NCBI RefSeq assembly: GCF_048593235.1
Contig: NC_133618.1
Span: forward strand, 29,112,478 to 29,176,477
Reading direction: 5' to 3'
From: Sminthopsis crassicaudata
Lineage: Eukaryota
DNA: 64,000 nucleotides
The position numbers and the translations under genes are program-made. The notes under the pieces are model-generated. The model had not been told where the DNA came from. It made no database searches and saw only the letters and a program-made list of their open reading frames with translations. Of the stretch, positions 3,285-61,030 are shown in pieces. Within the stretch, counting starts at the first letter, position 1. Each line of letters begins with the position of its first letter.

Positions 3285-3290
3285 TTTATT
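3285..3290 (-). terminator. Polyadenylation signal AATAAA, copy 1
   Basis: AATAAA about 550 nt after the stop. Homologous positions: 11455-11460, 30610-30615, 39515-39520, 48443-48448, 57586-57591; mutated to AAGAAA at 20415-20420. Confidence 0.65.
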
Positions 3291-3839: not shown

Positions 3840-5917
3840 TTAAGCTTTGAACTTGCAGAGGTAGAGGTGCTTCTTCTGACAAGATGCATCTTTCCACTTC
3901 TGGAATCCTGCAGAGAGATGGTCTGGATTCAGTTGAGGGACAAGGTAGGACCGAGGGGCCTAGTCTGAGGACCGTGGCTTCCTGGCCACAGAGTCTCCGC
4001 TCATTCAAGATTGTCCTTGAGTCCCAAGAAGAACAGAGAATGAAGATGGGAAAAGGAGGGAAGTAGAGAACCAAGAAGGAGGGAAGCAGAAGAAAAGGAA
4101 GAAGGGGAAAGAGGTCAAGTGAAAGAAAAGTAAGATGGAAGAACACAAGGAGAAGAGGATGCAGAGGGGGAGGGTTGGAGCTCACCAGACTCAGGAGTCA
4201 GGCTCACACAGTGGTTAGGATCGGTCTTTGCTGGGAAACCCGTCTCCCAGGCCTGGTAGAGGTAAAGGGCGTTGCTGCTCCATTTCCACCTGCGATTCTG
4301 GGTGAGAGGGTTGGGAAGGAATATTAGGGAAGAGGGAGACCTCCCACATCTACCTATTTTATATAATAACTCCTTATAATAACAGACCAACTGCACCAAA
4401 CCAGGCTCATTCTGTTCCCTAAGTCTTCCATGGTGCTGTGACCCGGCTGCTGCTTCTGCCATTGGGCAGCTCCAGCCTGTTCTGCCCCATCACGTTCTCT
4501 CTGGAGACCCAGGCAGCGCCACCCTCCCTCCCTCTGCCAGAAACCCTCCCCTGTCTCCTGCCAGTCCCTCTTCTGCCTGGCTCTGGCCCCAGGCCCTGCC
4601 CTGAGCTCCCTGAGCCTCTTGGGGAGTCTGAGGCTGGGTCTCTTGGACTGTTCCTCAAATGCAAGATTTCCTTCTTGGGACCCTGGTCTCCATTAAGTGC
4701 AGGGCCTGGGAAGGCCTCTGGGGGATGATGAGAATTCACAGATCACACAGGACTCGCTCATTGCAAAGAATGGGCAGAGACATGGAAGTGAAACTGTGGG
4801 TTGGTGAGTCCCCAGGAGCCCTGGGAGAGATGCAATCCCCCTCTCACCCCAGAGACCCCACAGACCCTTCTCCCTGCCCCCACCTGCTGCCCCCTGGATT
4901 TCTCCTATTCTTCCTCATGCTTCTGCACTTTTAGGGTCTCGGACCCTCAGAACTCATAGGATCCTCCCCCCCCCATATCACTGTTCCCCTTCTTTCCAGG
5001 ACTCAGACAGGGACAGGACCTCGGTCATACCTTGTTGGGGTCGTGCAGCCCGATCCAGACTGGGCTCTGACCCACCCCGTTCTCCATGATCATGGTGGCC
5101 ACAAAGGCGGCTTCAGCCTCGTTGAGCAGGGAGCCCAGGTGGCCCGAGGGGTAGCTCTGGCACAGCAGCTGTGGAGGGCAGGGAGCAGGTAAATGTGTGG
5201 GGGAGGGAGCAAAGGAGGCAGGAGAAGGCTCCTGGGAGCCTCAGGGGACAGGGTGGTCAATAGAGGAGGAGAAAAGGCTAGAGGGACCATGGTGAGATGT
5301 AACATGGGATACAAGGATTGATATTGTGGGAAATGGGGGGTCCATGAAACACAAGAAAGGGTAATCAAAGCTCTGAAGTCACCTGAGAAGGGAAAGTCTG
5401 GGTGACAGGTGAGGGTTTAGGGACTCATGGTGGCCACACTGATGATCCCAAGGGACATTGGGAAAGGGAGACAGACCCTGCCCCCTCCCAGGGCCCTCTC
5501 CAGAACCCACCTCAGCAGTGTTCCAGGTCTCCTGGGGACCCAATACTCCATAGCAGTGGGAGCCATGGAAGCCAAAGCCCTGGGGGCAGGAGCTCCTGGC
5601 AGAGGGGGGTGCAGGGGCCTCCTGCTTGCCTGGGGAGGGAGGAGAGCAGTTTCAGGGGAGCACAGCTGAGGTTCCTGCTCCCTGCAATCAGTCCTTGAAC
5701 CCTAAAAGCTCCCAACCCCTTCTTCTCTGCCTCACTGTGCACCCTCCTTCCATCCAACCCCTTCCCTTTCCCTCTTACTGTGTCCAAGCCCCTGTTCTGG
5801 GCCCAGGTGGGCAGTCAGAGGGAGGCTGAGGGACCCACCTTGTGTCAGGCAGGGGAGCAGCAGGCAGGCGAGGAGCAGCCCTGAGATGCTGGGGGACATT
5901 GTGGCAGACAGAGTCAT
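3840..5917 (-). CDS. REG1/REG3-like: REG-family C-type lectin, copy 1 (spliced, 171 aa, intact)
   Basis: Coding exons 5917-5839, 5629-5511, 5168-5031, 4297-4186, 3907-3840, all GT-AG and in phase. Translation: MTLSATMSPSISGLLLACLLLPCLTQGKQEAPAPPSARSSCPQGFGFHGSHCYGVLGPQETWNTAELLCQSYPSGHLGSLLNEAEAAFVATMIMENGVGQSPVWIGLHDPNKNRRWKWSSNALYLYQAWETGFPAKTDPNHCVSLTPESGFQKWKDASCQKKHLYLCKFKA*. Signal peptide, six CTLD cysteines, WIGLHDP motif, and exon layout of REG genes. Confidence 0.95.
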
Positions 5918-6301
5918 CTCTGATTCTGGGAAGGAGAAAAGACCCAAGGACCCTGAGAAGGGACAAGGATAATGGCCAAGACCTCGGAAGCCCCAGGCTG
6001 CTGCTGTTCCCCTGGTCTCTGGGCCCAGGCTGGGACTGAGTTCCCTTCTCTCTCTCCTCCTTCTCCCCTTCCTGAGCCTTAGAATCTGCAGACTCACAGG
6101 GCAGGACAGAATCTGGGAGCCCTGGACAGAGGGGACTCTGGAGAAGATGTCCCCTTCAGGGTAGCTTAGGAAGGACCATCTCCTGGCCTTCCCCCCAAGG
6201 TAACGGCCTCCTAGAGTGGCTGCCGCCTCGCCCACCTGGGAAGGGACGGGCCTCTGGAGCTGCATGGACTTGATCTCCCAGCCCTTCTCTCCTTCACTTA
6301 C

Positions 6302-6702
6302 CTGGTGGAGGAAATCTTGTGTCTGAGTAGAGGAGGACAGAACCTTTATAGAGAGAGGGCCCATTATGGGGGCAAGGCCAAGGATGGAAGGAGGGCCCCA
6401 GCACAGGGGCTGGGGAGGGGCAGGGGCTTCCTGGAAGAGGGAGAGGTCTTCCACACACCCCAAACTGAGAGGAGCCATGACTGGTCAGTGCCCAAAGCTC
6501 GCCAGCTGCCTTGTTCCCACAGCCAGGGGAGATTTCTGGGAAGGTCGGTGATTGGGGGAAAAGGGAATACAAGGGAATGAGGGAACTTCCTGCTGGGAAA
6601 GGTGTAGTGCCAGAGACCTGGCCTTGGAGAAGGAGGGAATGCCAGTCAAGGGAGCCACGTTTTCCTGATAAAAACCCTCTGTCTTTCCATTAATTCCTGG
6701 AA
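6302..6702 (-). promoter_or_regulatory. Copy 1 promoter and non-coding exon 1
   Basis: TATAAA 6350-6345; exon 1 donor CAG|GTAAGT at 6302/6301; GAS motifs TTCCTGGAA 6428-6436 and 6694-6702, TTCTGGGAA 6534-6542; CAGCTG-N5-TTCCCAC 6503-6520; TGATAA 6666-6671. Confidence 0.8.
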
Positions 6703-7699
6703 TTCCCAGGACAAGAAAGGTTTCCAGGTCTTGGGAAGAGCTTCCCCACGATCCCCTGCACATCCTCCAGAGCTGATTCGGGCTTGCATTGACATAGTCA
6801 AGAAAGAATTAAGTTCCCTTCAGCTTCTATTAGAACAGCTTAAAGGGCAGAGGCAAGAATCAACAGGCTGGACAGAGTAGGGGCTTCCAAGATACACAAT
6901 AAGAAAATAGCATTAAATCTCCTGAACTCCGGTGTAGCCCCACAATATCCAGATACACATGATTACTCCTCATTCTGAACTCTCTCCCTTGTCTAAGAGT
7001 CTCAACAAGAGCTTTAAAATGTGCTCCCATCAGTGGGACTTGGGCAGTTGGCAACTGGTTCGATTCTCCTCATTCAAACGTCAGAACCCACTGGCTGACT
7101 CTTTGGGTTCCCATTGGGTGATTCAAAGTAGATGATCCAACAGAGGACACGGTCTAGTTTCAGCGCCGTTGTGTGTCTCACAATATATTTCCCAGAACAT
7201 CCCACAAAGACCATGCACAGAATGAGAGTGACCCTAATGGCACGGCCACATCACTTCTATTATTCTGGCCACTAGGTTTCCTAATCCAGGATGTTCCATT
7301 TGGCCTGGAATATTGTAATGTCCTATTGTGGGTCTGTCTGTCTCTACTCTCTCCCCATTCCTGTCTTTTCTCCCTTTGCCCACAAATATTTCCCCAAAGA
7401 CCAGATCTTTCCATGTCCCTTCCTTAAGAAACACTCACTCTATCCCACCATCTCCCAGGTCAAATACAAAATCCCATTAGAAGTTCCAAGGCCTCCTCAC
7501 CTTCATCCTCCTGCCTCCTGACATCTTATTTCACCTCACGTGGGTTTGGTCCAGAAATACTGTTCCCCTGTCTTATAAGAAGACACATCAGGCCATTTCC
7601 TCTGCTGTCTCTCAAGCCTAGAATGTTCTCCCTCCTTCCCTTCCCTTCTTTTAAGATCCAATAAACATCACATTTTCTGCTTTGCTCAACCCTTCTAAT

Positions 7700-9085
7700 C
7701 TTTTTTAAATGTTAATAGTATTTTATTTTTTGCAATTTTATGCAAAGATTCTTTTCAACATTCAATTTTGTTACATTTTGAGTTCCTATTTTTTTCTCCC
7801 ATTTTCTCTCGCCTCCCCCAGCCCCAAGACAAGAGCAATCTGATACAGGTTACATATGTATAACCATTTTTAATATATTTCCATGTGAATCATGTTTGGA
7901 AAGAAGAAAAATAAGCAAAAAAGGAAGATCTTGATCATGAAAATGAAAAAATAAAACCAAAAAAAAAAAAAAGAAAAAGATGAAAATGTTCCCTATTTCT
8001 TGTTTGGTCATAAATTCCCCCATTTCGCAAAGATCTGACATACAGACTTTCCCCTTCTCTCCTATTTTGCTTATAGTATCTTTATGTCTAAATCAGGCAC
8101 CCATTTTGACCTTATCTTGGTAGAGTGCGAGAATGGGTGTATCGATGCCTACTTTCTGACATACTATGTATTTCCAGTTTTCTCAAGAATTTTTGTGAAA
8201 TAGTGAGTTCTTATGGGAGAAACTGGAGTCTTTGTGTTTATCAAATAATAGATTACTTTAGTCATTGACTATTGTGTCTTGTGTCCCTGAGCTTCCATCT
8301 GCATTTAATCTCTATGTTCTTTTTGGAATGCAGATGGCATTTTTCATCCAAAGTTTATCGGAATTGTCTCGGGGATCATTGAAGTACCAAAAAAGAGCTA
8401 AATTTGTCAGAGCTGCTCATACCATCTTGCCATTACTGTTTACTGGTTTCTGTTCCCTTCACTCAGCACATAAATTTTTCCCGGCTTTTCTGACATCAGC
8501 CTGTTCATAATTTCCATTAGATTCATATAGTATAAGTTATTCGACCACTAATCAGTTGATGGGTATATGGATCCTAGGACATACAGTTTGATAGCCCTTC
8601 CAGCATAGATCCAAATTGTTCTCTAGAATGATTGGATCATTCAGTTCACAACTCCACTAACAATGTATTAGTACTCAGTTTCCTCACACCCCTCCTTTTA
8701 TCTTTCCTCTCTTATCTTTTCCTGTCATTTAACCATTCTGATAAGTGTGAAATGGTACCTTGTGTTGTTTTAATTTGTGTTTTCTCTAGTTAGTAGTTAT
8801 TTACAACATTTTTTCATGACTAGAAATGGCTTTAATTTCTTCATCTGAAAATTGTCTCTTCATATCCTTTGACCATATATCAGTTGGGGAATATCTTGTA
8901 CCATCATAAATTTGACCTATTTTTCTATATAATTTAGAAATGAGGCCCTTATCAGAAAGACTGCTTATAAATATTGCTTCTCAACTATCTGCTTCCCTTC
9001 TAATCTTGGCTGCATTGTTTTTGTTTATGTAAAATATTTTAATCTAATGTAATCAAAATTATGCACTTTGCATTTCATAATGTTG
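7700..9085 (-). mobile_element. Rearranged L1 fragments, spacer 1
   Basis: T-rich L1 tail at ~7700, L1 3' UTR and ORF2 pieces; a ~117-bp internal deletion near 8558 relative to the other spacers. Ends approximate. Confidence 0.7.
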
Positions 9086-9256
9086 AATTCAGAAATGAAA
9101 TAGGGGAGGTTTAGTTTGGGGGAGATTTTGAGAATCAATCATTGGAGAGAAAAAATCAGCTCTGTCCCTGCATTTTGAGAGTCTCTTCCTTGTATATCTG
9201 CTCCTGCTCCTTTCTCAGGTGCTGTTTGTCCTTGGATTACCTGAGGAATGAGGTCT

Positions 9257-11004
9257 TTCAGGAAAAGATGATGATAAATGTTGGAGGGGATATGGGAAAA
9301 CAAGGATTTGTTGGTGGAGTTGTGAACTGACACAATCATTCTGAAGAGAATTTAGAACTATTCCCAAAGAGCTATCACACTGTGCATGCCCATCATTCAG
9401 CAGTGTGTCTACCAGTCATGTGTCTCAAAGAAATCATAAAAAAGGGAAAAGGACCTATGTGTGCAAAAATGTTTGTAGCAGCCCTTTTTGTACTAGTGTG
9501 GAACTGGAAATTGAATGGATGCCCATCAGTTGAGGAATGGCTGAGTAAGTTATGGTATATGAATGTTATGGAATATTATTGTTGTATAAGAAATGACCAG
9601 GAGGAGGATGTCAGAGAGGCCTGATGAGATTTACACGAACTGATCCATAGTGAAGTGAGTAGAACCAAGAGACCATTGTACACAGCAACAGCAAGATTAT
9701 GTGGTGATCAACTCTGATGGATGTGGCTCTTTTCAACAGCGCGGTTATTCAGGCCAATTCCAATGGTCTTGTGATGGAGAGAGCCATCTGCACCCAGAGA
9801 GAGCACTGTAGAGACTGTGTGGATTGCAATGTAGTAATTTCATCTTTTTATGGTCATTTGTTGCTTTTTGTTTTCTTTCTCATTTTTCCTTTATTGATTT
9901 GATTTTTTTTTTTTGTTCAGACGACAAAAGTGGAAAAATGTATAGAATTGCACATGTTTAATACATATTGTATTTATTGCCATTTAGGGTGGATGTGGAT
10001 CAAGGGAGGGAGAAAAATTTGGAACACAAGGCATTGCAAGGGTGAATATTGAAAACTATCTTTACATATATTTTTAAAATAAAAAGATATTATTTTGAAA
10101 AAAAAAAAAAGAATGAGGTCTGAAATCATGTCTCCTATTAGACTAATTGTAGAAAACACCTTTGAAAGGAGCTTTCACAAAATCTAATCATTCTGGAGAG
10201 CAATCTGGAATTATGCCCAAAAGGTTATTAAAACGTCCATACCCTTTGACCCAGCCGTACTACTACTGGGCTTATATCCCAAAGAAATACTAAAAAAGGG
10301 AAAGGGACCAGTATGTGCCAAAATGTTTGTGGCAGCTCTTTTTATAGTGGCTAGAAACTGGAAAATGAATGGATGCTCATCAGTTGGAGAATGGTTGGGT
10401 AAATTATGGTATATGAATGTTATGGAATATTATTGTTCTGTAAGAAATGACCAACAGGAGGAATACAGAGAGGCCTAGAGAGACTTACATCAACTGATGC
10501 TGAGTGAAATGAGCAGAACCAGAAGATCATTATACACTTCAACAATGGTACTGTATGAGGATGTATTCTGATGGAAGTGGATATCTTCAACATAGAGAAG
10601 AGCTAATCCAATTCCAATTGATCAATGATGGACAGAATCAGCTATACCCAGAGAAGGAACACTGGGAAATAAGGGTAAACTGTGAGCAGTGTTTTTTTGT
10701 TTGTTTGTTTGTTTTGTTTCTCTTCCCAGATTATTTTTACCTTGAGAATACAATCCTTCCTTTGCAACAGCAACAACAACAAAATTCAGTTCTGCACATA
10801 TATATTGTACCTAGGATATACTATAAGATATTTAATATGTATGGGAATGCCTGCCATCTAGGGGAGGGGGTGGAGGGAAGGAGGGGAAAAACTCGGAACA
10901 GAAGGGAGTACAATGGATAATGTTATAAAAAAATTTACCTATGCATATGTACTGTCAAAGAAAATGTTATAATTACAAAAATTAATAAAAAAGAAAAAAA
11001 AAAA
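9257..11004 (+). mobile_element. Two adjacent 5'-truncated L1 insertions, spacer 1
   Basis: L1a 9257-10110 with TSD GAATGAGGTCT; L1b 10179-11004 with TSD GAAAGGAGCTTTCAC. Both carry the ORF2 C-terminus (KMFVAALF...WKxNGCPS.GEW), 3' UTR and A-tail. Confidence 0.9.
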
Positions 11005-12007
11005 GAAAGGAGCTTTCACCTTTTGTGTATGTTGAGCTATGCCCACTGACTCCCCCTTGAGAATGCAAGCCCTTTGCAGTTAAGAACCTACTTTCTTCCT
11101 TTCTTTTAATCCCTAATATTATTTGAGCCAGATGAAATGCTGAATAAATTTATTTGTTTTCTTGGTTAGCTGGTGAATGATTGGCTTAATTCTCTGAAGA
11201 TGTGTATTGGTCTCAACAACTCTGGAGTGGATTTTTACCCACAGGTAATAAAACTGTGTTCACAAAATTTGCCAAAAGGCTAAAAAAGGATCTTCCTATT
11301 TTCAGGGATAAGAAACTTAACTCTGAGCATCTCTAAAATTGAGGTTCTTTCCAGAATGTTACCATGAATGAAGTTTTTAAATACCATGAAGCATCATTGT
11401 ACATAAAAATCTGTGACTCATCAAAATAATTCAGTGATTCAGATGAAAAAGAAGTTTATTAAAAGACACAAAGTTATATGTGGAGTCTACAACAGAGCTA
11501 TCAATAAAGACAACAACATTTGGAAACAATATGAAGGAGAACACTCCCTCAGTCATACCTCTAAGGAGTGCACATAGAGAATTCCTGTCTTCTGTCTTCC
11601 CAAAATAGACGCAAAAGTAGCATTTTATCCATTGAGGGTTAGCTTAGTTTTTCAAGTTCAAGTAATCAGATTTTGTTCTTCAGTCACCTCCTTGACTCCA
11701 TGCTGCAGAATTTTCACCTTAGCAATGTTTGTCAAAAGAGTTAAACTTGAACTTTTCCATTTTTAAAAAATATTGTGACCATTTATGTTCAGGTTGCCTG
11801 TTAACTTAGGGCTCATTGTGGTTTGTAATATAAAAGTTCCCAAGGTACTGAGTGAGGTGCTTGGAGAAAGTTGGTGGATAACAAAGGGGATGTGAATGGT
11901 TGATGTGAGGAAGTCAGATGGGAAAAAAGATCTGGGAAGGCAGAGAGATTATGCTATGGCTATCATTAGCTGAGTCTGACTCTAAGACAACAGAATTCCA
12001 ATTCTTT

Positions 12008-12462
12008 TTTTAAAAAAATTATTATAGCTTTTTATTTACAAATTATATGCATGGGTAATTTTACAGCATTGACAATCGCCAAACCTTTTGTCCCAATTTT
12101 TCCCCTCCTTTCCTCACCCCTTCCCCCAGATGGCAGGTTGACCAATACATGTTAAATATGTTAAACTATATATTAAATACAATATTAGTATACATGTCCA
12201 AACAGTTATTTTGCTGTTCAAAAAGAAGAGGAGGGGTAGCTAGATGGTGCACTGGACAGAGCATCAGCCCTGAACTCAGGAGGACCTGAGTTCAAATCTG
12301 ACCTCAGACACTTAACACTTCCTAGCTGTGTGACCTTGAGCAAGTCACTTAATTCCAATTGCATCAGGAAAAAAAATAAAGAATTTGACTTTAAAATAGT
12401 GTACTATTAGCCTGTGAAGGAAATAAAAAATGCAGGCAGACAAAAATAGAGGGATTGGGAAG
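12008..12462 (-). mobile_element. L1 3'-UTR fragment in the copy 2 3' UTR, with a nested WSINE1-like SINE (+, 12233-12377)
   Basis: 16-bp TSD AGAATTCCAATTCTTT at 11992-12007 and 12463-12478; L1 AATAAA at 12036-12031; SINE with A/B-box head ggggtagctagatggtgca...gagttcaaatc. Confidence 0.88.
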
Positions 12463-12495
12463 AGAATTCCAATTCTTTGTCCTGTCTTGTCCCCT

Positions 12496-14717
12496 TTAAG
12501 CTCTGAACTTGCAGAGGTAGAGGTTCTTCTTCTGACAAGGTTCATCTTTCCACCTCTGGAATCCTGTGGAGAAATGGTCTAGGTTCAGCTGAGGCACAGG
12601 TTAGGGCAGGACATTCCCAGTTTGATGACTTTAGCTTCCCAGCCACAGGGTCTCCACTCATTCAATTGTCCTTGAGGTCCCCAGAAGAAAGGAGAATGAA
12701 GACAGGGAAAGGAGGGAAGTAGAAGACAAGGAAGGAAGGAGGCTGTACAAAAGAAAGAGGAGGGAAAAGGAAAGAAAACTAAGAAGAAGTTTGGGAATTG
12801 GACAAGAGAGGAAAGAAGATGATAAATTAGGGGGAAAGAAAAGAGAAAAGGCACAATGAGGAGAGCAAGAGAGAGGAGAGGAGTCACTCTCATATTCTTG
12901 GAAGGAGGTGCCCTCATTCCTCCAGGCTCTCACACAGCGCCAGGAGAAGAGAATGCTCTTGCAGAGAAGGAAGGGGTTGGAGCTCACCAGACTCAGGAGT
13001 CAGGCTCACACAGTGGTTAGGATTGCTCTTTGCTGGGAAGCCCGTCTCCCAGGCCTGGTAGAGGTAAAGGGCGTTGCTGCTCCATTTCCACCTGCGATTC
13101 TGGGGGAGAGGGTTGGGAAGGGGGCGGTTAGGGAAGAGGGAGACCCCCCCCCACATCTACCTCTTTTATATAATAACTCCTTATAATAACAGACCAACTG
13201 CACCAAACCAGGCTCATTCTGTTCCCTAAGTCTTCCATGGTGCTGTGACCTGGCTGCTGCTTCTGCCATTGGGCAGCTCCAGCCTGTTCTGCCCCATCAT
13301 GTTCTCTCTGGGAGACCCAGACAGAACCACCCTCCCTCCCTCTGCCAGAAACCCTCCCCTGTCTCCTGCCAGTCCCTCTTCTGCCTGGCTCTGGCCCCAG
13401 GCCCTGCCCTGAGCTCCCTGAGCCTCTTGGGGAGTCCGAGGCTGGGTCTCTTGGACTGTTCCTCAAATGCAAGATTTCCTTATTGGGACCCTGGTCTCCA
13501 TTAAGTGCAGGGCCTGGGAAGGCCTCTGGGGGATGATGAGAATTCACAGATCACACAGGACTCGCTCATTGCAAAGAATGGGCAGAGACATGGAAATGAA
13601 ACTGTGGGTTGGTGAGTCCCCAGGAGCCCTGGGAGAGATGCAATCCCCCTCTCGCCCCAGAGACCCCACAGACCCTTCTCCCTGCCCCCACCTCCTGCCC
13701 CCTGGATTTCTCCTATTCTTCCTCATGCTTCTGCACTTTTAGGGTCTCGGACCCTCAGAACTCATAGGATCCTACGCCCCCACACATCACTGTTCCCCTT
13801 CTTTCCAGGACTCAGACAGGGACGGCCTCTTGGTCATACCTTGTTGGGGTCGTGCAGCCCGATCCAGACTGGGCTCTGACCAACCCCATTCTCCATGATC
13901 ATGGTGGCCACAAAGGCGGCTTCAGCCTCGTTGAGCAGGGAGCCCAGGTGGCCCGAGGGGTAGCCCTGGCACAGCAGCTGTGGAGGGCAGGGAGCAGGGC
14001 TGGGTAAATGTGGGAGTCAGGAGCTAAGGAGGCAGAAGAAGGCTCCTGGGAGCTTCATAGGATAAGGTGGTCAATAGAGGAGGAGAAGAGGCTAAACGGA
14101 CCATGGTGAGATGTACCAGGGGTACAAAGATTGCTATTGTGGGAAGTGGGGGGTCCATGAAAAACCAAAAAAGGAGAGCAAAGCTCTGGAGTCACCTGAG
14201 AAGGGAAGGTCTGGGTGACACGTGAGGGCTTAGGGACTCATGGTGGCCACACTGATGACCCCAAGTGACATTGGGAAAGGGAGACAGACCCTGCCCCCTC
14301 CCAGGGCCCTCTCCAGAACCCACCTCGGCAGTGTTCCAGGTCTCCTGGGGACCCAATACTCCATAGCAGTGGGAGCCATGGAAGCCAAAGCCCTGGGGGC
14401 AGGAGCTCCTGGCAGAGGGGGGTGCAGGGGCCTCCTTCTGGCCTGGGGAGGGAGGAGAGCAGTTGAGGTTCCTGCTCCCTGCACCTCAGTCTTTGAATCC
14501 TACAGACCCCCAACCCCTCTCCTCTGTCCCACAGTGCCCACCCTGCTGCTGTCCAGCCCCTTCCCTTTCCCTCTTACTGTGTCCAAGCCCCTGTTCTGGG
14601 CCCAGGTGGGCAGTCAAAGGGAGGCCTGAGGGACCCACCTTGTGTCAGGCAGGGGAGCAGCAGGCAGGCGAGGAGCAGCCCTGAGACTCTGGGGGACATC
14701 ATGGCAGGCAGTGTCAT
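12496..14717 (-). CDS. REG1/REG3-like: REG-family C-type lectin, copy 2 (171 aa, intact)
   Basis: Exons 14717-14639, 14442-14324, 13977-13840, 13099-12988, 12563-12496. Prosegment QKEAPAPPSAR; exon 5 loop AWETGFPAKSNPNHC; C-terminus FQRWKDEPCQKKNLYLCKFRA*. Confidence 0.95.
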
Positions 14718-15111
14718 CTGATTCTGGGGAGGAGACAAGAGAACCCCTGATCTCCTGCCCAAGGACCCTGAGAAGGGACAAGGATAATGGCCAAGACCTC
14801 GGAAGCCCCAGGCTGCTGCTGTTCCCCTGGTCTCTGGGCCCCGGCTGGGACTGAGTTCCCTCTTCTCTCCTCCTTCTTCCCTTCCTGAGCCTCAGAAATC
14901 TTCAGACCAGGAGTAAGACAGAATCCGGGAGCCCTGGACAGGGTGGACTTGGGAGAAGATGTACCCTTCAGGGTAGCTTAGGAAGGACATATCCTGGCCT
15001 TCCCCCCAAGGTACCGGACTCCTGGAGCAGCTGCCGCCTCTCCCCCCGGGAAAGGAAGGGCCTCTGGATCTGCAGGGACCCCGTCTCCCAGCCCTTCTCT
15101 CCCTTACTTAC

Positions 15112-15554
15112 CTGGTGGAAGGAATCGTGTGTCGGAGGAGCAGAGGAGGACGGAACCTTTATAGGGAGAGGACCCATTATGGGGGCAGGGCTGGGGATGG
15201 AGGGAGGGCCCGAGCACAGGGGCTGGGAGGGGCAGGGGCTTCCTGGAACAGGGCGAGGTCTTCCTCAGTTTGGGGTCAGGAGCAGAGAGGAGCCCTGGGT
15301 TCTTCCCACAATGTGAGGTAGAGACCCATGGCTGCCTCCTGCCCCAAAGCTCGCCAGCTGCCACGTTCCCACAGCCAGGGGAGATTTCTGGGAAGGTTAG
15401 TGATTGGGGGAAAAGGGAACTCAAGGGAATGAGGGAACTTCCTGCCGGGAAAGGTGTAGTGTCAGAGACCTGGCCTTGGAGAAGGAGGGAATGCCAGTCA
15501 AGGGAGCCACGTTTTCCTGATAAAAACCCTCTGTCTTTCCATTAATTCCTGGAA
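15112..15554 (-). promoter_or_regulatory. Copy 2 promoter and non-coding exon 1
   Basis: TATAAA 15163-15158; donor at 15112/15111; GAS 15240-15248, 15386-15394, 15546-15554; E-box+RBPJ site 15355-15372. Confidence 0.8.
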
Positions 15555-16554
15555 TTCCCAGGACAAGAAAGGTTTCCAGGTCTTGGGAAGAGCTTCCCCA
15601 CGATCCCCTGCACATCCTCCAGAGCTGATTCGGGCTTGCATTGACATAGTCAAAAAAGAATTAAGTTCCCTTCAGCTTCTATTAGAACAGCTTAAAGGGC
15701 AGAGGCAAGAATCAACAGGCTGGACAGAGTGGGGGCTTCCAAGATACACAATAAGAAAATAGCATTAAATCTCCTGAACTCCGGTGTAGCCCCACAATAT
15801 CCAGATACACATGATTACTCCTCATTCTGAACTCTCTCCCTTGTCTAAGAGTCTCAACAAGAGCTTTAAAATGTGCTCCCATCAGTGGGACTTGGGCAGT
15901 TGGAAACTGGTTTGATTCTCCTCATTCAAACGTCAGAACCCACTGGCTGACTCTTTGGGTTCCCATTGGGTGATTCAAAGTAGATGATCCGACTGAGGAC
16001 ACGGTCTAGTTTCAGCGCCGTTGTGTGTCTCACAATATATTTCCCAGAACATCCCACAAAGACCATGCACAGAATGAGAGTGACCCTAATGTCACGGCCA
16101 CATCACTTCTATTATTCTGGCCACTAGGTTTCCTAATCCAAGATGTTCCATTTGGCCTGGAATATTGTAATGTCCTATTGTGGGTCTGTCTGTCTCTACT
16201 CTCTCCCCATTCCTGTCTTTCCTCCCTTTGTCCACAAATATTTCCCCAAAGACCAGGTCTTTCCATGTCCCTTCCTTAAGAAACAATCGCTCTATCCCAC
16301 CATCTCCCAGGTCAAATACAAAATCCCATTAGAAGTTCCAAGGCCTCCTCACCTTCATCCTCCTGCCTCCTGACATCTTATTTGACCTCACTTGGGCTTT
16401 GGTCCAGAAATACTGTTCTCCTGTCTTATAAGAAGACACATGAGGTCATTTCCTCTGCTGTCTCTCAAGCCTAGAATGTTCTCCCTCCTTCCCTTCCCTT
16501 CTTTTAAGATCCAATAAAAATCCCATCTTCTGCTTTGCTCCACCCTCCTAACTT

Positions 16555-18045
16555 TTTAAAATGTTAATAGTATATTATTTTTCCAATTTTATGCAAAGAT
16601 TCTTTTCAACATTCAATTTTGTTACATTTTGAGTTCCTAATTTTTTCTCCCATTTTCTCTTGCCTCCCCCATCCCCAAGACCCAAACAATCTGATACAGG
16701 TTACATATGTATAACCATTTTTAATATATTTCCATGTGAATCATGTTTGGAAAGAAAAATAAGCAAAAAAGGAAGATCTTGATCATGAAAATGAAAAAAT
16801 AAAACCAAAAAAAAAGGAAAAGATGAAAATGTTCCCTATTTCTTGTTTGGTCATAAATTCCCCCGTTTCGCAAAGATCTGACATACAGACTTTCCCCTTC
16901 TCTCCTATTTTGCTTATAGTATCTTTATGTCTAAATCAGGCACCCATTTTGACCTTATCTTGGTAGAGTGCGAGAATGGGTGTATCGATGCCTACTTTCT
17001 GACATACTATGTATTTCCAGTTTTCTCAAGAATTTTTGTAAAATAGTGAGTTCTTATGGGAGAAACTGGAGTCTTTGTGTTTATCAAATAATAGATTACT
17101 TTAGTCATTGACTATTGTGTCTTGTGTCCCTGAGCTTCCATCTGCATTTAATCTCTATGTTCTTTTTGGAATGCAGATGGCATTTTTCATCCAAAGTTTA
17201 TTGGAATTGCCTCGGGGATCATTGAAGTACCGAAAAAGAGCTAAATTTGTCAGAGCTGCTCACACCATCTTGCCATTACTGTTTACTGGTTTCTGTTCCC
17301 TTCACTCAGCACTTAAATTTTTCCCGGCTTTTCTGACATCAGCCTGTTCATAATTTCCATTAGATTCATATAGTATAAGTTATTCGACCACTAATCAGTT
17401 GATGGGTATATACTCAATTATCAGTTCTTTTGGAATTGGAATTGGAGGTGCTATAAGTATTTTTGTATATCAGGGTCCTTTACCCTCTTTTATGATAACT
17501 TGGGACATAGACCCAGCAGTGGCAGTATGGATCCTAGGACATACAGTTTGATAGCCCTTCCAGCATAGATCCAAATTGTTCTCTAGAATGATTGGATCAT
17601 TCAGTTCACAACTCCACTAACAATGTATTAGTACACAGTTTCCTCACACCCCTCCTTTTATCTTTCCTCTCTTATCTTTTCCTGTCATTTAACCATTCTG
17701 ATAAGTGTGAAATGGTACCTTGTGTTGTTTTAATTTGTGTTTTCTCTAGTTAGTAGTTATTTACAACATTTTTTCATGAGTAGAAATGGCTTTAATTTCT
17801 TCATCTGAAAATTGTCTCTTCATATCCTTTGACCATATATCAGTTGGGGAATATCTTGTACCATCATAAATTTGACCTATTTTTCTATATAATTTAGAAA
17901 TGAGGCCCTTATCAGAAAGACTGCTTATAAATATTGCTTCTCAACTATTGCTTCCCTTCTAATCTTGGCTGCATTGTTTTTGTTTATGTAAAATATTTTA
18001 ATCTAATGTAATCAAAATTATGCACTTTGCATTTCATAATGTTGA
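16555..18045 (-). mobile_element. Rearranged L1 fragments, spacer 2
   Basis: Paralog of 7700-9085. Confidence 0.7.
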
Positions 18046-18215
18046 ATTCAGAAATGAAATAGGGGAGGCTTAGTTTGGGGGACATTTTGGGAATCAATCA
18101 TTGGAGAGAAAAAATCAGCTCTGTCCCTGCATTTTGAGAGTCTCTTCCTTGTATATCTGCTCCTGCTCCTTTCTCAGGTGCTGTTAGTCCTTGGATTACC
18201 TAAGGAATGAGGTCT

Positions 18216-19964
18216 TTCAGGAAAAGATGATGATAAATGTTGGAGGGGATATGGGAAAACAAGGATTTGTTGGTGGAGTTGTGAACTGACACAATCATTC
18301 TAAAGAGAATTTAGAACTATTCCCAAAGAGCTATCACACTGTGCATGCCCATGATTCAGCAGTGTGTCTACCAGTCATGTGTCCCAAAGAAATCATAAAA
18401 AAGGGAAAAGGACCTATGTGTGCAAAAATGTTTGTAGCAGCCCTTTTTGTGCTGGTGTGGAACTGGAAATTGAATGGATGCCCATCAGTTGAGGAATGGC
18501 TGAGTAAGTTATGGTATATGAATGTTATGGAATATTATTGTTGTATAAGAAATGACCAGGAGGAGGATGTCAGAGAGGCCTGATGAGATTTACACAAACT
18601 GTTCCATAGTGAAGTGAGTAGAACCAAGAGACCATTGTACACAGCAACAGCAAGATTATGTAGTGATCAACTCTGATGGATGTGGCTCTTTTCAACAGCG
18701 CGGTTATTCAGGCCAATTCCAATGGTCTTGTGATGGAGAGAGCCATCTGCACCCAGAGAGAGCACTGTAGAGACTGTGTGGATTGCAATGTAGTAATTTC
18801 ATCTTTTTATGGTCATTTGTTGCTTTTTGTTTTCTTTCTCATTTTTCCTTTTTTGATTTGATTTTTTTTGTTCAGACAATAAAAGTGGAAATATGTATAG
18901 AATTGCACATGTTTAATCCATATTGGATTTATTGCCATTTAGGGTGGATGTGGATCAAGGGAGGGAGAAAAATTTAGAACACAAGGTTTTGCAAGGGTGA
19001 ATATTGAAAACTATCTTTACATATATTTTTAAAATAAAAAGGTATTATTTTGAAAAAAAAAAAGAATGAGGTCTGAAATCATGTCTCCTATTAGACTAAC
19101 TGTAGAAAACACCTTTGAAACGAGCTTTCACAAAATCTAACAATTCTGGAGAGCAATCTGGAATTATGCCCAAAAAGTTATCAAAACGTGCATACCCTTT
19201 GACTCAGCTGTACTATTACTGGGCTTATATCCCAAGGAAATACTAAAGAAGGGAAAGGGACCAGTATGTGCCAAAATGTTTGTGGCAGCTCTTTTTGTAG
19301 TGGCTAGAAACTGGGAAATGAATGGATGCTCATCAGTTGGAGAATGGTTGGGTACATTATGGTATATGAATGTTATGGAATATTAATTTTCTGTAAGAAA
19401 TGACCAACAGGAGGAAAACAGAGAGGCCTGGAGAGACTTACATCAACTGATGCTGAATGAAACGAGCAGAACCAGAAGATCATTATACACTTCAACAATG
19501 GTACTGTCTGAGGATGTATTCTGATGGAAGTGGATATCTTCAACATAGAGAAGAGCTAATCCAATTCAAATTGATCAATGATGGACAGAATCAGCTATAC
19601 CCAGAGAAGGAACACTGGGAAATAAGTGTAAACTGTGAGCATTGTTCTTTTTGTTTTTTTGTTTGTTTGTTTGTTTTGTTTCTCTTCCCAGATTATTTTT
19701 ACCTTGAGAATACAATCCTTCCTTTGCAACAGCAACAACAACAAAATTCAGTTCTGCACATATATATTGTACCTAGGATATACTATAAGATATTTAATAT
19801 GTATGGGAATGCCTGCCATCTAGGGGAGGGGGTGGAGGGAAGGAGGGGAAAAACTCGGAACAGAAGGGAGTACAATGGATAATGTTATAAAAAAATTTAC
19901 CTATGCATATGTACTGTCAAAGAAAATGTTATAATTACAAAAATTAATAAAAAAGAAAAAAAAA
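18216..19964 (+). mobile_element. Two L1 insertions, spacer 2
   Basis: L1a 18216-19063 and L1b 19132-19964; same TSDs. Confidence 0.9.
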
Positions 19965-20967
19965 GAAAGGAGCTTTCACCTTTTGTGTATGTTGAGCTAT
20001 GCCCACTGACTCTCTCTTCAGAATGCAAGCCCTTTGCAGTTAAGAACCTACTTTCTTCCTTTCTTTTAATCCCTAATATTATTTGAGCCAGATGAAATGC
20101 TGAATAAATTTATTTGTTTTCTTGGTTAGCTGGTGAATGATTGGCTTAATTCTCTGAAGATGTGTATTGGTCTCAACAACTCTGGAGTGGATTTTTACCC
20201 ACAGGTAATAAAACTGTGTTCACAAAATTTGCCAAAAGGCTAAAAAAGGATCTTCCTATTTTCAGGGATAAGAAACTTAACTCTGAGCATCTCTAAAATT
20301 GGGGTTCTTTCCAGAATGTTACCATGAATGAAGTTTTTAAATACCATGAAGCATCATTGTGCATAAAAATCTGTGACTCATCAAAATAATTCAGTGATTC
20401 AGATCAAAAAGAAGTTTCTTAAAAGACACAAAGTTATATGTGGAGTCTACAACAGAGCTATCGATAAAGACAACAACATTTGGAAACAATATGAAGGAGA
20501 ACACTCCCTCAGTCATATCTTTAAGGAGTGCACATAGAGAATTCCTGTCCTCTGTCTTCCCAAAATAGAGACAAAAGTAGAATTTCATCCATTGAGGGTT
20601 AGCTTAGTTTTTCAAGTTCAAGTAATCAGATTTTGTTCTTCAGTCACCTCCTTGACTCCATGCTGCAGAATTTTTACCTTAGCAATGTTTGTCAAAAGAG
20701 TTAAACTTGAACTTTTCCATTTTTAAAAAATATTGTGACCATTTATGTTCAGGTTGCCTGTTAACTTAGGGCCCATTGTGGTTTGTAATATAAAAGTTCC
20801 CAAGGCACTGAGTGAGGTGCTTGGAGAAAGTTGGTGGATAACAAAGGGGATGTGAATGGTTGATGTGAGGAAGTCAGATGGGAAAAAAGATCTGGGAAGG
20901 CAGAGAGATTATGCTATGGCTATCATTAGCTGAGTCTGACTCTAAGACAACAGAATTCCAATTCTTT

Positions 20968-21420
20968 TTTTTTTTAATTTATTATAGCTTTTTATTTACA
21001 AATTATATGCATGGGTAATTTTACAGCATTGACAATCACCAAACCTTTTGTCCCAATTTTCCCCCTCCTTTCCTCACCCTTCCCCCAGATGGCAGGTTGA
21101 CCAATACATGTTAAATATGTTAAACTATATATTAAATACAATATTAATATACATATCCAAATGGTTATTCTGCTGTTCAAAAGGAATTGGAGGGGTAGCT
21201 AGATGGTGCAGTGGATAGAGCATCAGCCCTGAACTCAGGAGGACCTGAGTTCAAATCTGACCTCAGACACTTAACACTTCCTAGCTATGTGACCTGGAGC
21301 AAGTCACTTAATTCCAATTGCATCAGGAAAAAAATAAAGAATTTAACTTTAAAATAGTGTACTATTAGCCTGTGAAGGAAATAAAAAATGCAGGCAGACA
21401 AAAATAGAGGGAATGGGAAG
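20968..21420 (-). mobile_element. L1 3'-UTR fragment with nested SINE (+, ~21192-21335), copy 3 3' UTR
   Basis: Same insert and TSD as in copy 2. Confidence 0.88.
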
Positions 21421-21453
21421 AGAATTCCGATTCTTTCTCCTGTCTTGTCCCCT

Positions 21454-24466: not shown

Positions 24467-24513
24467 TTCCCGGGACAAGAAAGGTTTCCAGGTCTTGGGA
24501 AGAGCTTCCCCAC

Positions 24514-51664: not shown

Positions 51665-52018
51665 CTCTGATTCTGGGGAGTAGACAAGAGAAATCCTTAT
51701 CTCCCACCCAAGGACCATGGGGAGAAGGGACAAGGACAATGGTCGAGACCTCAGGAGCCCCGGGCTGCTGCTGGTCTCCTGGTCTCTGGGCCCAGGCTGG
51801 GTCTGAGATCCCTCCTTTCTCCTTCTCCCCTTCCGGGGTCTCAGGGAGTATGTAAATCTGGGTGCAGGACAGAATCTGGATGGTCCAGTGAACAGCTTTC
51901 CTTCTATCATAATATATTAGAAATGACCATCTAATGGCATCTCCCTCCAAGATGGGAAGGAAATCGTCTCAGGAGCCTGTAGGGACCTGATCTCCCAGAC
52001 CTTATCTCCTTTACTTAC

Positions 52019-52429
52019 CAGACTGGTAGACTGAAGGGATAATGGATCTGACCAGAAGAGGATAGAACCTTTATAGAGAGAGGACCCAAGTGGGTGTAGA
52101 TATTGGGAGGAGCTTAAAAGAAGGAGACTTGGCAGGGACAGGGGGATGGAGGGAGGGTTAGAACACAGGTGCTGTGGGGGACAGGGGGATTCCTGGAAGA
52201 GGTGAGGTCTTCCTCCGCCTGGGTTCAGGAGCAGATCAGACCACTGCTTTCTTCCCATAATATGAGGTAGAGGCATATGACTGGCTCCTGCCCCAAAGCA
52301 CACCAGCTGCTATATTCCCATAGCCATGGGACACCTTGATGTTGTTTGATCATTGAAGGAAGAGGAAAGAATCATGGGATTGAGTGAGCCTTCTGCAGGG
52401 TTTGGATGGAAAAGACCAAGTTCTGGGAA
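52019..52429 (-). promoter_or_regulatory. Copy 6 divergent promoter and non-coding exon 1
   Basis: TATAAA 52075-52070; donor CTG|GTAAGT at 52019/52018; GAS TTCCTGGAA 52190-52198 and TTCTGGGAA 52421-52429; CAGCTG-N5-TTCCCA 52304-52320, retained although flanking sequence is diverged. Confidence 0.75.
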
Positions 52430-57585: not shown

Positions 57586-57591
57586 TTTATT
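57586..57591 (-). terminator. Polyadenylation signal AATAAA, copy 7
   Basis: Homologous to the copy 1 signal and kept in the diverged 3' UTR about 600 nt after the stop. Confidence 0.65.
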
Positions 57592-58190
57592 CAAAGACAC
57601 ATAACTATTTGAAATGTCTACAACAGAACGATCCACAAACAGAGCACCATGGGAAGGAATCTGAAGAAGAGCTTCCCTGAGTCATTTGATTATGAGAAGA
57701 TCACAACAGAGACCACAGTCCCTACCATTCCCACAACACAGGAAAAGGCAGAAATTCATCCCCTAAATCTAACTTGGATTTCAAATTTCAAGGGATGACA
57801 TTTTTGTCTTGAACGCTCTCTTTGACGCCTTGGTTAAGAACTCTCACATTCACAAGATTTCTGAAAGGAACTAAAACTGGAACTTTTCCACTTTTTAACA
57901 ACAATGTGACCATTTATATTCAGGGTCTGTATCAACTTTGAGCTACTTGTGGTATGGAAGATAAAAAGCACTTGAGCAGGTAGTGCTGAGTGCAGTGGAG
58001 GGTGAATGGAAGAACAGGAACAGGAGAAGTGGTGAGAGTGGTCAGATAACAGAAGGGAGGGTGGTCTGGTGAGGAAGGATGATGGAAAGAAGATGCTCTG
58101 GGAGGGCAAAGAGATTATGGCCACAGCCCTCCTGGGCTGTATTTGGATGCAAGCACCCGAATTTTGGGCTCTTCTTCTGTCTGCTCCCCT

Positions 58191-60403
58191 TTAAGCTCTG
58201 AACTTGCAGAGGTAGAGGTTCTTCTTCCGACAATCTTCATTTTTCCACTTCTGGAATCCTGTGGAAAGATGGTCTGGGTTCAGTTGAGGGGACAGCTTAG
58301 AGCAAGAGATCCATGGTCTGATGATTGTGGCTTCCTGGCCACAGGGTCTCCTCATTCAAGATAGTTCTCAAGATAACAAGAAGAAAGGAGAATGAAGATA
58401 GGAAAAAGGGAAATAGAAGACAAGGAAGAAGGGAAGCAGAAGAAGAGGAAGAGGAGGAAAAAGGAAAGAAAGCTAAGATGGATGAAGGTTGGGAATTAGA
58501 GGAGAGGGAAGAAGATGATAAATTAGGGGGAAAGAAAAGAGAAAGGATAAAAAGAAGGGAGGGCAAGAGAAAGGAGAGGAGTCACTCTCACATTCTTGGA
58601 AGGAAGTGCCCCCATGCCCCCAGGCTTTCAGACAGCCCAAGGAGAAGAGGATGCTCCTGTGCAGCTGGCAGAGGGGGAGGGTTGGCGCTCACCAGACTCA
58701 GTAGTCAGGCTCACACAGTAGTTGGGTTGGCTGTTCGTTGGGAAGCCCGACTCCCAGGCCTGGTAGAGGTAAAGGGCATTGCTGCTCCATTTCCACCTGC
58801 GATTCTGGGAGAGAAGGTTGGGAAGGGGGCAGTTAGGGAAGAGTGGGACCCCCCACCTGCCTCTTTTATATAATAACTCGTTATAATAAACAGACCAACT
58901 GCACATGAACTTTTCTTTAGCCCAGACCTCCCAAACCAGGCTCATTCTGTTCCCTAAGTCTTCCCTGGTGCTGTGACCCCAGCTGCCATTGGGCAGCACC
59001 ACCCTATTCTGCTCCATAACGTTCTCTCTGGGAGACCCAGACAGTGCCACCCTCCCTCCTTCTGCCAGAAACCCTCCCTTGTCTCCTGCCCCAGACCCTC
59101 CTCTAAGGGGTCTCTTGGGGAGACTTAGGCCCAGATTGCCTTGGGCTCTTCCCCCATGCAAGGTTTCCTTATTGTGACCTTGTCTCCATGAGGGTCGTGA
59201 CTGAGAAGTCCCCTCAGGGAGATGCTGGGAACTCAACCCAGACATGGGCAGAAAATAATTTCCCATTGAACCAAAGGGATGGGCAGTGATGGTGGACTCA
59301 GATGGGGGATAGGTAAGTATTAAAAACCTGGGGGGTGGAAGTGTAGGCTTCCTCTGGCCCAGGACCCAACCCTCCAAGCTCCTGCCCCTTTTCTACTCAC
59401 TGGCTTCCCTAGTTCTAGTGCTTTTCTTAGAGTCCTGGACCTACGAGACTGGTAGGAACCACCTCCTCATCAGCTCCACACACACTGTTGTTCCCCTTCT
59501 CCCCAGTCTCAGACAGGGACAGGCCCTCGGTCATACCTTGTTGGGGTCGTGCAGACCGATCCAGACTGGGTTCTGACCAACCCCGTTCTCCATGATCATG
59601 GTGGCCACAAAGGTAGCCTCAGCCTCATTGAGCAGGGAGCCCAGGTGGCCTGAGGGGTAGCCCTGGCACAGCAGCTGTGGAGGGCAGGGAGCAGGTAAAT
59701 GTGTGGGGGAGGGAGCAAAGGAGGCAGGAGAAGGCTCCTGGGAGCCTCAGGGGACAGGGTGGTCAATAGAGGTAGAAAAGAGGTTAAAGGGACCATGGTG
59801 AGATGGCTATGGGGCACAGGGATTACTTTTGTGGGAAGTGGGGGTAAGAAACACCAGAAAGGGGGAGCAAAGCTCTGGAGTCACCTGAAAAGGGAAGGTC
59901 TGGGTGACAGGTGAGGGCTTACAGACTCATGGTGGCCACACTGATGTCGCCAAGGACATGGGGATAAGGAGACAGATCCCTCCCCCTCCCACAGCCTCTC
60001 CAGAACCCACCTCAGCAGTGTTCCAGGTTTCCTGAGGACCCAATACTCCATAGCAGTGGGAGCCATGGAAGCCAAAGCCCTGGGGGCAGGAGCTCCTGGC
60101 AGAGGGGGGTGCAGGGGCCTCCTGCTTGCCTGGGAAGGGAGGAGAGCAGTTGAGGTTCCTGCTCCCTGCACATCAGTCCTTGAACCCTACAAGCTCCCAA
60201 CCCCTTCTTCTCTGTCCCACAGTGCCCACCCTGCTGCTGTCCAGTCCCTTCCCTTTCCCTCTTACTGTGTCCAAGCCCTTTCTAGGCCCAGGTGGGCAGT
60301 CAGAGGGAAGCCTGAGGGACCCACCTTGTGTCAGGCAGGGGAGCAGCAGGCAGATGAGGAGCAGCCCTGAGACTCTGGGGGACATCATGGCAGGCAGCAT
60401 CAT
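58191..60403 (-). CDS. REG1/REG3-like: REG-family C-type lectin, copy 7 (171 aa, intact, most divergent lectin domain)
   Basis: Exons 60403-60325, 60129-60011, 59674-59537, 58804-58693, 58258-58191. Loop AWESGFPTNSQPNYCVSLTTESG; C-terminus FQKWKNEDCRKKNLYLCKFRA*. Confidence 0.95.
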
Positions 60404-60797
60404 CTGATTCTGGGGAGGAGACAAGAGAAACTCTGATCCCCCGCCCAAGGGGGTCCCCAAGAGGGGACGAGCATAATGTCCAAGACCTCAGAAGCCTGGC
60501 TGCTGCTGTTCTCCTGGTGTCTGGGCCCAGGCTGGGACTGAGTTCCCTCCTCTCTTCTCCTTCTCCCCTTCCTGAGCTTTAGAATCCACAAACTCCTGGA
60601 GCAGGACAGAAGCTGGGAGCCCTGGACAGGGGGGACTCGGGAGATGTCCCCTTCAGGGTAGCTTAGGAAGTATATATCCTGGCCTTCCCTCCAAGGTAAC
60701 AGCCTCCTAGAGCAGCTGCTGCCTCTCCCATCTGGGAAGGGAAGGGCCTCTGGAGCTGCAGGGACCCCATCTCCCAGACCTTCTCTCCCTCACTTAC

Positions 60798-61030
60798 CTG
60801 GTGGAAGGAATCGTGTGTCTGAGCAGAAGAGGATGGAACCTTTATAGGGAGAGGACCTGTTATGGGGGCAGGGCTGGGGATGGAGGGAGGGCACAGGGGC
60901 TGGGGAAGGGCAGGGGCTTTCTGGAAGAGGGTGAGGTCTTCCACACCCCAAACTGAGAGGAGCCATGGCTGGCCAGTACCCAAAGCTCACCAGCTGCCTC
61001 GTTCCCACAGCCAGGGGAGATTTCTGGGAA
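60798..61030 (-). promoter_or_regulatory. Copy 7 promoter and non-coding exon 1
   Basis: TATAAA 60846-60841; donor at 60798/60797; proximal GAS altered (TTTCTGGAA 60918-60926); TTCTGGGAA 61022-61030; E-box+RBPJ site 60991-61008. Confidence 0.78.

Follow-up and report, generated by a model that had tools for sequence, protein, structure and literature searches.

Seven intact REG-family lectin genes in tandem within a larger REG cluster of the dunnart Sminthopsis crassicaudata

Tandem genes in the window

[quoted passage not shown] A self-BLAST of the window resolves tandem units of approximately 9 kb, the inner units being 94-98% identical and the two edge units about 87-91%, and the base composition is itself periodic with a cycle of roughly 9 kb, in which stretches of 57-59% GC alternate with stretches of 35-37% GC. 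A motif scan of the window places the exon encoding WIGLHDPNK seven times, always on the minus strand. The five coding exons were defined by reading one unit in full and were then searched against the window by BLAST; with the exons of one copy as query there were exactly 35 full-length matches free of insertions or deletions, five in each unit and all on the minus strand, with lengths of 79, 119, 138, 112 and 68 nt in all seven genes. Upon splicing, each copy yields a 516-nt coding sequence (CDS) and a protein of 171 amino acids (aa) with no stop codon, every acceptor reads AG and every donor GT, and the seven proteins all differ from one another.

REG genes consist of six exons, the first of them non-coding, behind a TATA promoter. 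This structure (five coding exons, a non-coding exon 1 and a TATA box) is matched by each of the seven copies. A TATAAAGG box lies 412-448 nt upstream of the ATG in every copy, a GTAAGT donor that marks a short non-coding exon 1 follows it by about 40 nt, again in all seven, and an AATAAA or ATTAAA signal is found 457-599 nt past each stop codon. The original prediction, made from the sequence alone, had described seven intact minus-strand open reading frames of 171 codons with these exon lengths, splice sites, TATA boxes and polyadenylation signals, and both splicing and BLAST confirm that description; the ends that it gave to the array, 3840 and 60846, are the stop codon of the first copy and the TATA box of the last. 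Beyond the 35 exons, tblastn found no further REG exons or pseudogenes in the window, an Rfam scan of the window found no RNA families, and the window contains no N bases.

The genes are listed below in window coordinates as G1 to G7. Their types refer to four DNA types (A to D) set by whole-gene alignment, introns included.

3285..6350, minus strand: G1 (type B), 171 aa, XP_074141094; TATA box at 6350, AATAAA at 3290; coding exons 5917-5839, 5629-5511, 5168-5031, 4297-4186 and 3907-3840
12031..15163, minus strand: G2 (type C), 171 aa, XP_074141095; TATA box at 15163, AATAAA at 12036; non-coding exon 1 ending at a GTAAGT donor near 15112; coding exons 14717-14639, 14442-14324, 13977-13840, 13099-12988 and 12563-12496
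20991..24075, minus strand: G3 (type C), 171 aa, XP_074141096; TATA box at 24075; coding exons 23649-23571, 23373-23255, 22908-22771, 22036-21925 and 21521-21454
31131..34277, minus strand: G4 (type C), 171 aa, XP_074141097; TATA box at 34277; coding exons 33834-33756, 33559-33441, 33093-32956, 32197-32086 and 31661-31594
40089..43197, minus strand: G5 (type C), 171 aa, XP_074141098; TATA box at 43197; coding exons 42749-42671, 42474-42356, 42008-41871, 41134-41023 and 40620-40553
49018..52075, minus strand: G6 (type C), 171 aa, XP_074141099; TATA box at 52075; coding exons 51664-51586, 51399-51281, 50935-50798, 50063-49952 and 49549-49482
57586..60846, minus strand: G7 (type D), 171 aa, XP_074141100; TATA box at 60846; coding exons 60403-60325, 60129-60011, 59674-59537, 58804-58693 and 58258-58191
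6351..49481, no strand assigned: repeated AT-rich spacers, G1 to G6, 35-37% GC, with LINE-like fragments

All seven spliced proteins exactly match RefSeq entries, XP_074141094 to XP_074141100, whose accessions are consecutive and run in window order; these were reached through a search of a representative library with the 46-aa exon 3, cluster look-ups and exact matching. Because these RefSeq proteins were predicted independently, the array lies far beyond chance. The genes sit on CM109182.1 (GCA_048593235.1) at approximately 29.112-29.176 Mb, a record coordinate being the window coordinate plus 29,112,477, and the exact matches to S. crassicaudata proteins likewise settle the marsupial origin that had been proposed. 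They also mean that the array is not hidden, as had been supposed, for all seven genes are already in RefSeq with identical protein models, under the names "lithostathine-1-alpha-like" or "lithostathine-like". As such, no annotation rescue is needed.

Several features of the units merit description in their own right. The GC-rich stretches are the gene bodies (e.g. 12500-15200, 57-59%), in contrast to the spacers (e.g. 16000-21000, 35-37%). From G1 to G6, the spacers of different units are 95-100% identical to one another, and the one separating G6 from G7 bears no relation to them. The repeated spacers appear to be largely transposon-derived; an open reading frame fragment at 18341-18583 on the plus strand, together with its equivalents in other units, is one that we take to be the C-terminal part of LINE-1 ORF2. 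In units 2-5 the introns diverge more (3.6%) than the AT-rich spacers (2.0%), even when CpG sites are left out, and a higher mutation rate in the GC-rich genes, or biased gene conversion there, could account for this. Upstream of G3, the spacer carries a private foldback insertion of 863 bp (24514-25376), with two arms of 283 nt (24514-24796 and 25094-25376) that are 96% complementary and stand 297 nt apart; it makes up most of the extra length of unit 3, and its restriction to one unit is evidence for physically separate units as opposed to copies made in assembly. The unique G6-G7 spacer holds a small tandem repeat (53501-53635, 3.3 copies of a 41-bp unit), the only array that Tandem Repeats Finder reports in the window. 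At the 5' ends of the genes, the non-coding exon 1 of G6 (within 51586-52075) is unlike that of all other copies, and a variant leader (MTLS.TMSP..) is common to G6 and G1 and differs from that of G2-G5 and G7, a pattern that points to a patchwork of exchanges at these ends.

The encoded proteins and their place in the REG family

Each gene is predicted to encode a secreted protein of approximately 16 kDa, composed of a signal peptide, a pro-segment and one C-type lectin-like domain (CTLD) with six cysteines. Pfam Lectin_C is the sole domain in all seven proteins (64-66 bits against a cutoff of 22.6, residues 59-169). A Defensin_4 match (E = 0.013) that arose when single exons were searched against Pfam, at which level Lectin_C was sub-threshold, is spurious and was superseded by the full-length search. 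In full-length phmmer searches against the PDB, human lithostathine scores 163.6 bits and aligns without a gap (residues 34-170 to 7-143), pro-PAP/REG3A scores 122.5 bits (the REG3A range being 115-122) and REG4 101 bits; the yolk sac IgY receptor, lymphocyte antigen 75 and the PLA2 receptor score alongside only by summing the domain scores of their multiple CTLDs. The database relatives are all named lithostathine or regenerating islet-derived protein. The assignment to REG-family secreted C-type lectins thus stands, with lithostathine, then REG3A, then REG4 as the best single-domain relatives of solved structure. An AlphaFold model (mean predicted local distance difference test, pLDDT, 71.5) has core blocks at 86-95, and its leader, pro-segment and long loop (residues 113-133) fall below 50. 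A fold search with this model returned the lithostathine structures 1QDD and 1LIT first (49-51% identity) and then REG3A, lithostathine and REG3A together making up the top six; other C-type lectins came next, with REG4 at rank 14.

The first 27 or so residues form a hydrophobic leader (…GLLLACLLLPCLTQG) that can be aligned to those of annotated REG precursors and is, on this alignment, a putative signal peptide. The product of exon 2 is in register with residues 7-38 of pro-PAP and lithostathine, including a P-x-A-R motif, such that P-P-S-A-R of the window proteins aligns with L-P-S-A-R of pro-PAP and L-P-Q-A-R of lithostathine. The predicted leader is followed by a pro-segment of 11 residues ending in Arg (G1, G2 and G7) and then by a domain of 133 residues; the processed domain is 133 residues in all eutherian REG1 rows of our alignment but one (134), and 138 in REG3. 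Among the six cysteines, C41, C52, C69 and C142 are invariant in an alignment of 42 REG sequences, and C159 and C167 are conserved in at least 90%. The secreted forms are mildly basic, with an isoelectric point (pI) of about 8.3.

Neither EPN nor QPD is present in the long-loop region of the window proteins, and at the WND position they have WKD or WKN, in keeping with other REG proteins; as judged from these residues, the classical motifs of Ca2+-dependent carbohydrate-binding CTLDs are not present. All of the window proteins read HDPNKNRRWKW in the first loop, with no insertion. Eutherian REG3 alone has five extra residues there (…GYEPNAGGW… in one row, EPYADGW and EQPNGGGW in others). The KNRRW motif is common to the window proteins, eutherian REG1 and amphibian REG4, and since amphibian REG4 has the same loop, this likeness to REG1 is an ancestral trait that has been kept and does not speak for orthology.

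Orthology was addressed with a maximum-likelihood tree that takes in 60 REG proteins and has amphibian REG4 at its root. Eutherian REG1 and REG3 are sister clades in this tree (support 99/94), to the exclusion of the window genes. A small number of marsupial genes, among them a dunnart gene of 176 aa, fall on the eutherian REG1+REG3 side, and the window genes fall in a separate, marsupial-only clade of 37 members (95/69). Forcing the window clade together with eutherian REG1 is 26 log-likelihood units worse, with a P value of 0.003 in the approximately unbiased (AU) test. Orthology to REG1 was thus rejected by the tree and by the AU test, despite the RefSeq names, and membership of the REG3 type was set aside on the lack of the EPN loop insertion and a clade position outside REG3. 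As placed by these sequences, the window genes are most plainly read as REG-family members of a marsupial-only branch that separated before, or apart from, the eutherian REG1/REG3 split.

The wider cluster, its history and selection

The flanks of the window were fetched and scanned, giving continuous gap-free coverage of 29.070-29.259 Mb. This locus of approximately 190 kb holds at least 16 REG-like gene models, all on the same strand, eleven of them of 171 aa and a twelfth of this kind modelled at 232 aa; an array of seven, as originally proposed, is a count of what falls inside the window only. In ascending coordinate, the order is as follows, with primes marking the second block described below.

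1st, approximately 29.070-29.076 Mb of CM109182.1, same strand as the cluster: 385-aa C-type lectin gene, directly adjoining the REG cluster; presumably CLEC4F/CD207-like
2nd, same strand: 176-aa REG gene, XP_074141092
3rd: degenerate REG remnants
4th, same strand: type A gene, XP_074141093
5th to 7th, minus strand: G1 (type B), G2-G6 (type C) and G7 (type D)
8th, same strand: type E, a 209-aa REG gene with its stop codon 748 bp beyond the window end
9th, same strand: type F, a 178-aa REG gene
10th, CM109182.1 approximately 29,195,655-29,197,511: uncalled REG-like copy
11th: second set of degenerate REG remnants
12th to 16th, same strand: A' (XP_074141101), B' (the 232-aa model), C' (XP_074141103), D' (XP_074141104) and E' (209 aa)

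Whole-gene identity within types is 98.9% for type A (XP_074141093 and XP_074141101), 97.9% for type B (G1 and the 232-aa model, which is the closest paralogue of G1), 95-98% for type C (G2-G6 and XP_074141103) and 98.7% for type D (G7 and XP_074141104), and between types it is 76-92%. The segment from type A through at least type E is present twice; type C has five copies in block 1 and a single one in block 2. Spacers included, the collinear blocks are 97-98% identical over 15-20 kb; the duplicated block measures at least some 80 kb with a repeat offset of about 108 kb, and F' of block 2 would lie beyond the sequence read. The uncalled copy between the 178-aa gene and block 2 matches coding exons 2-5 and may be a pseudogene or an unrecorded model. 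Degenerate REG exon remnants lie immediately downstream of type A in each dunnart block and likewise in the devil, and this remnant is an old pseudogene that marks the array end; its position next to type A in all three places supports positional orthology. For comparison, the human REG cluster is located at 2p12, between LRRTM4 and CTNNA2 (PMC9650133).

A DNA tree of the dunnart copies, together with the devil and Antechinus genes that were fetched, places these types in time. Devil XP_012396338 is the orthologue of type A (100/100), and devil XP_031805536 and Antechinus XP_051838857 are the orthologues of type D, i.e. of G7 (100/100), both of them adjoining an E-type gene as G7 does, so that devil and Antechinus orthologues of types A and D exist by position as well as by phylogeny. 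A third devil gene is sister to all of the dunnart B and C copies (joint clade 100/100; dunnart-only clade 94/96). Given these placements, and within the sequence sampled, G7 is judged an old member of the array and G1-G6 to have arisen in the dunnart lineage. The recent lineage-specific expansion of the original prediction therefore holds for G1-G6, relative to the devil and Antechinus genes sampled, but not for G7, which has one-to-one orthologues in both. The proteins of the devil (XP_031805536, XP_012396338) and Antechinus (XP_051838856 to XP_051838858) have the same architecture of 171 or 170 aa and belong to the same clade (100/99), and the annotated genes of this kind number three or four in the devil and three in Antechinus, as against twelve in the dunnart (eleven of 171 aa and one of 232 aa).

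Paths between dunnart and devil orthologues measure about 0.10 substitutions per site, and the path from B to C is about equal; the distance is 0.02-0.05 among type C copies and 0.011-0.022 within block pairs. By these lengths the split of B and C would have come early, the amplification of C later and the block duplication last. Dating in years was dropped in favor of relative branch lengths, as rates are uncertain and gene conversion is evident; at residues 94, 130 and 141, all four combinations are present among G2-G5. It is reasonable to postulate an ancestral dasyurid set of types A, B/C and D with the more distant E and F, from which, in the dunnart lineage, B/C would have given rise to B (G1) and C, and C to five copies (G2-G6), while D (G7) stayed single. 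The array would have grown by unequal crossing-over of the 9-kb unit, and a larger block, from A to at least E, would then have doubled (97-98% identity).

The copies also carry an imprint of selection. Among the seven genes there are 57 distinct runs of insertion or deletion, all of them intronic (P = 6e-7 under random placement), and variable columns amount to 10.7% in exons versus 28.8% in introns (p = 3e-18). The same holds for the type C copies alone, in which none of 17 such runs is in an exon (P = 0.012) and variable columns are 4.7% in exons versus 8.1% in introns (p = 0.007). As insertions and deletions are confined to introns and exons vary far less than introns, we conclude that the copies have been kept intact by selection, in agreement with what had been proposed for them; such a pattern is not expected from gene conversion alone. 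The ratio of nonsynonymous to synonymous substitution (dN/dS) over the whole CDS ranges from 0.16 to 0.77. The corresponding ratio of proportions (pN/pS), which derives from small counts, takes values of 0.14 across residues 28-112, 0.75 across residues 113-171 and 1.7 in the leader, and this would fit a constrained N-terminal half of the domain with C-terminal loops that change faster. As such, the array illustrates cleanly how tandem amplification can proceed by unit and by block under purifying selection.

Function and meaning of the expansion

Taken as a whole, the array is real, belongs to an ordinary kind of gene family, was correctly read and is already annotated, and the original prediction needs correction on three points: hidden is the wrong word for the array, seven genes are only part of it, and it is not of the REG3 type. 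The window is best explained as a 64-kb piece of a REG locus with seven functional-looking genes of the marsupial branch, which expanded unit by unit and would encode secreted lectins of the REG1 type, a reading to which we assign a probability of roughly 0.8. Going by the family, pancreas or gut epithelium would release the proteins into the lumen, trypsin would remove the pro-segment, and the processed domain would act as a Ca-independent, aggregating or fibril-forming, surface-binding lectin. More copies would then raise the dose and lend the binding loops some diversity. For Reg3, a review (PMC12530498) treats both the activation by trypsin and the part played by EPN.

Certain points weigh against this reading and temper it. 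Copy number rests on the assembly, and transcription, tissue and use of the predicted promoter and polyadenylation sites are matters that we infer from sequence. The signal peptide and the trypsin site are assigned by alignment, and the pN/pS values rest on small counts. In the phylogeny, the group used for the AU test was defined after the tree had been seen, the root relies on two amphibian REG4 sequences with long branches, and eutherians are sampled modestly. Unseen copies in the unread devil interval from D to A (about 57 kb) could make part of the B/C expansion older. Last, gene conversion among the copies, as witnessed by residues 94, 130 and 141, blurs the dating, and all ages are therefore minimum ages.

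Among known systems, lithostathine/REG1A (the pancreatic stone/thread protein; 1QDD, 1LIT) is the highest-scoring single-domain relative of solved structure, and it shares with the window proteins an 11-residue pro-segment ending in Arg, a 133-residue domain, a KNRRW(H/K)WSS loop without insertion and the six cysteines. However, the window genes are not orthologous to REG1A, since eutherian REG1 groups with eutherian REG3; their pro-segment is neutral to basic (QKEAPAPPSAR) whereas that of REG1 is acidic, and their copy number is far above that of REG1. With REG3A, REG3G and Reg3b (HIP/PAP; 1UV0, 4MTH, 2GO0) they have in common the family, the fold and a pro-segment with a trypsin-type Arg site, REG3 moreover sharing a gene cluster with REG1 in eutherians. 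They differ from REG3 in lacking the five-residue EPN insertion, in their lower scores (115-122 bits) and in lying outside the REG3 clade.

The main functional alternative is that the genes are REG3-like, that is, gut bactericidal lectins that bind peptidoglycan and form membrane pores as part of a defence arsenal, possibly for immunologically naive young. The exon-2 segment, which covers the pro-segment and the first part of the domain, does score slightly better against pro-PAP/REG3A than against lithostathine, at 25.1 versus 21 bits, the mildly basic pI of the secreted forms would suit such a role, changes concentrate in the C-terminal loops (pN/pS 0.75-1.6) as they would on a pathogen-facing surface, and marsupials are known for expanded antimicrobial peptide families (e.g. 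PMC12006171). However, the EPN motif is the peptidoglycan-recognition element of Reg3 (PMC12530498), and the loop-1 insertion that carries it is absent from every copy; over the full length the lithostathine score of 163.6 bits exceeds the 115-122 bits of REG3A, and the clade lies outside eutherian REG3, and indeed outside the eutherian REG1+REG3 clade altogether. The bactericidal analogy drawn in the original prediction is weakened accordingly, its suggested link to the defence of marsupial young is speculative, and we consider the REG3-like role unlikely.

We regard it as improbable, too, that most of G2-G6 are silent or redundant by-products of crossing-over, intact merely through recency and through conversion by an expressed donor or two. 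In favor of this, divergence between the copies is only 2-5%, their spacers are near-identical, and the mosaic variants indicate exchange between copies. On the other hand, within G2-G6 alone all 17 runs of insertion or deletion lie outside exons and exons vary about half as much as introns, and no copy has lost its TATA box, its exon-1 donor or any splice site. Gene conversion does not explain the contrast between exons and introns, because it would homogenise the introns as much as the exons.

Allelic divergence in a mammal is expected to be well below the 2-3% that separates the two blocks. That the cluster is an artefact of assembly, either over-expanded repeats or two haplotypes laid in tandem, is highly improbable: 9-kb units at 95-98% identity are hard to assemble and blocks 1 and 2 are 97-98% identical, yet there are no N gaps in the window or any fetched flank, every unit has private substitutions and indels (and one the 863-bp foldback), and the two-haplotype variant is unlikely because of both the divergence between blocks and their different structure (five type C copies versus one).

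With the REG1-type reading thus preferred, the cluster may be set beside its eutherian counterparts. The rodent Reg cluster (Reg1, Reg2, Reg3a/b/g/d) and other eutherian REG clusters are likewise tandem, with a copy number that depends on lineage; there are five REG family members in humans and seven in mice (PMC12530498), and dogs have two REG3 genes and no REG1 (PMC9650133). In comparison, the dunnart cluster is larger (at least 16 models), was built from a marsupial-only clade, and contains five to six repeats of a unit of about 9 kb together with a block that is doubled. Searches of a literature library on marsupial and dunnart REG, lithostathine and REG evolution found no paper describing a marsupial REG expansion or marsupial REG/lithostathine genes, and the underlying expansion, which is modestly interesting, is apparently unpublished. 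A bolder and decidedly tentative proposal is that no larger REG cluster has so far come to light in a mammal (at least 16 genes over approximately 190 kb), that most of it stems from a marsupial-only lineage older than the eutherian REG1/REG3 split, and that this lineage was recently amplified under selection for dose and for diversity of the C-terminal loops; its products would be lumenal, trypsin-activated, anti-microbial or aggregating lectins with a mode of recognition unlike that of EPN-based REG3.

The value of these genes is comparative, in that their RefSeq names suggest an orthology to REG1 that the tree rejects. The dunnart is an emerging laboratory marsupial, in which a REG lineage has multiplied to numbers far above those annotated for the devil and Antechinus. 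If expression occurs in gut, pancreas or milk, the copies would constitute a lectin arm beside marsupial antimicrobial expansions such as the cathelicidins, and if expressed they would also offer a natural series of close variants with which to ask what REG1-type lectins bind.

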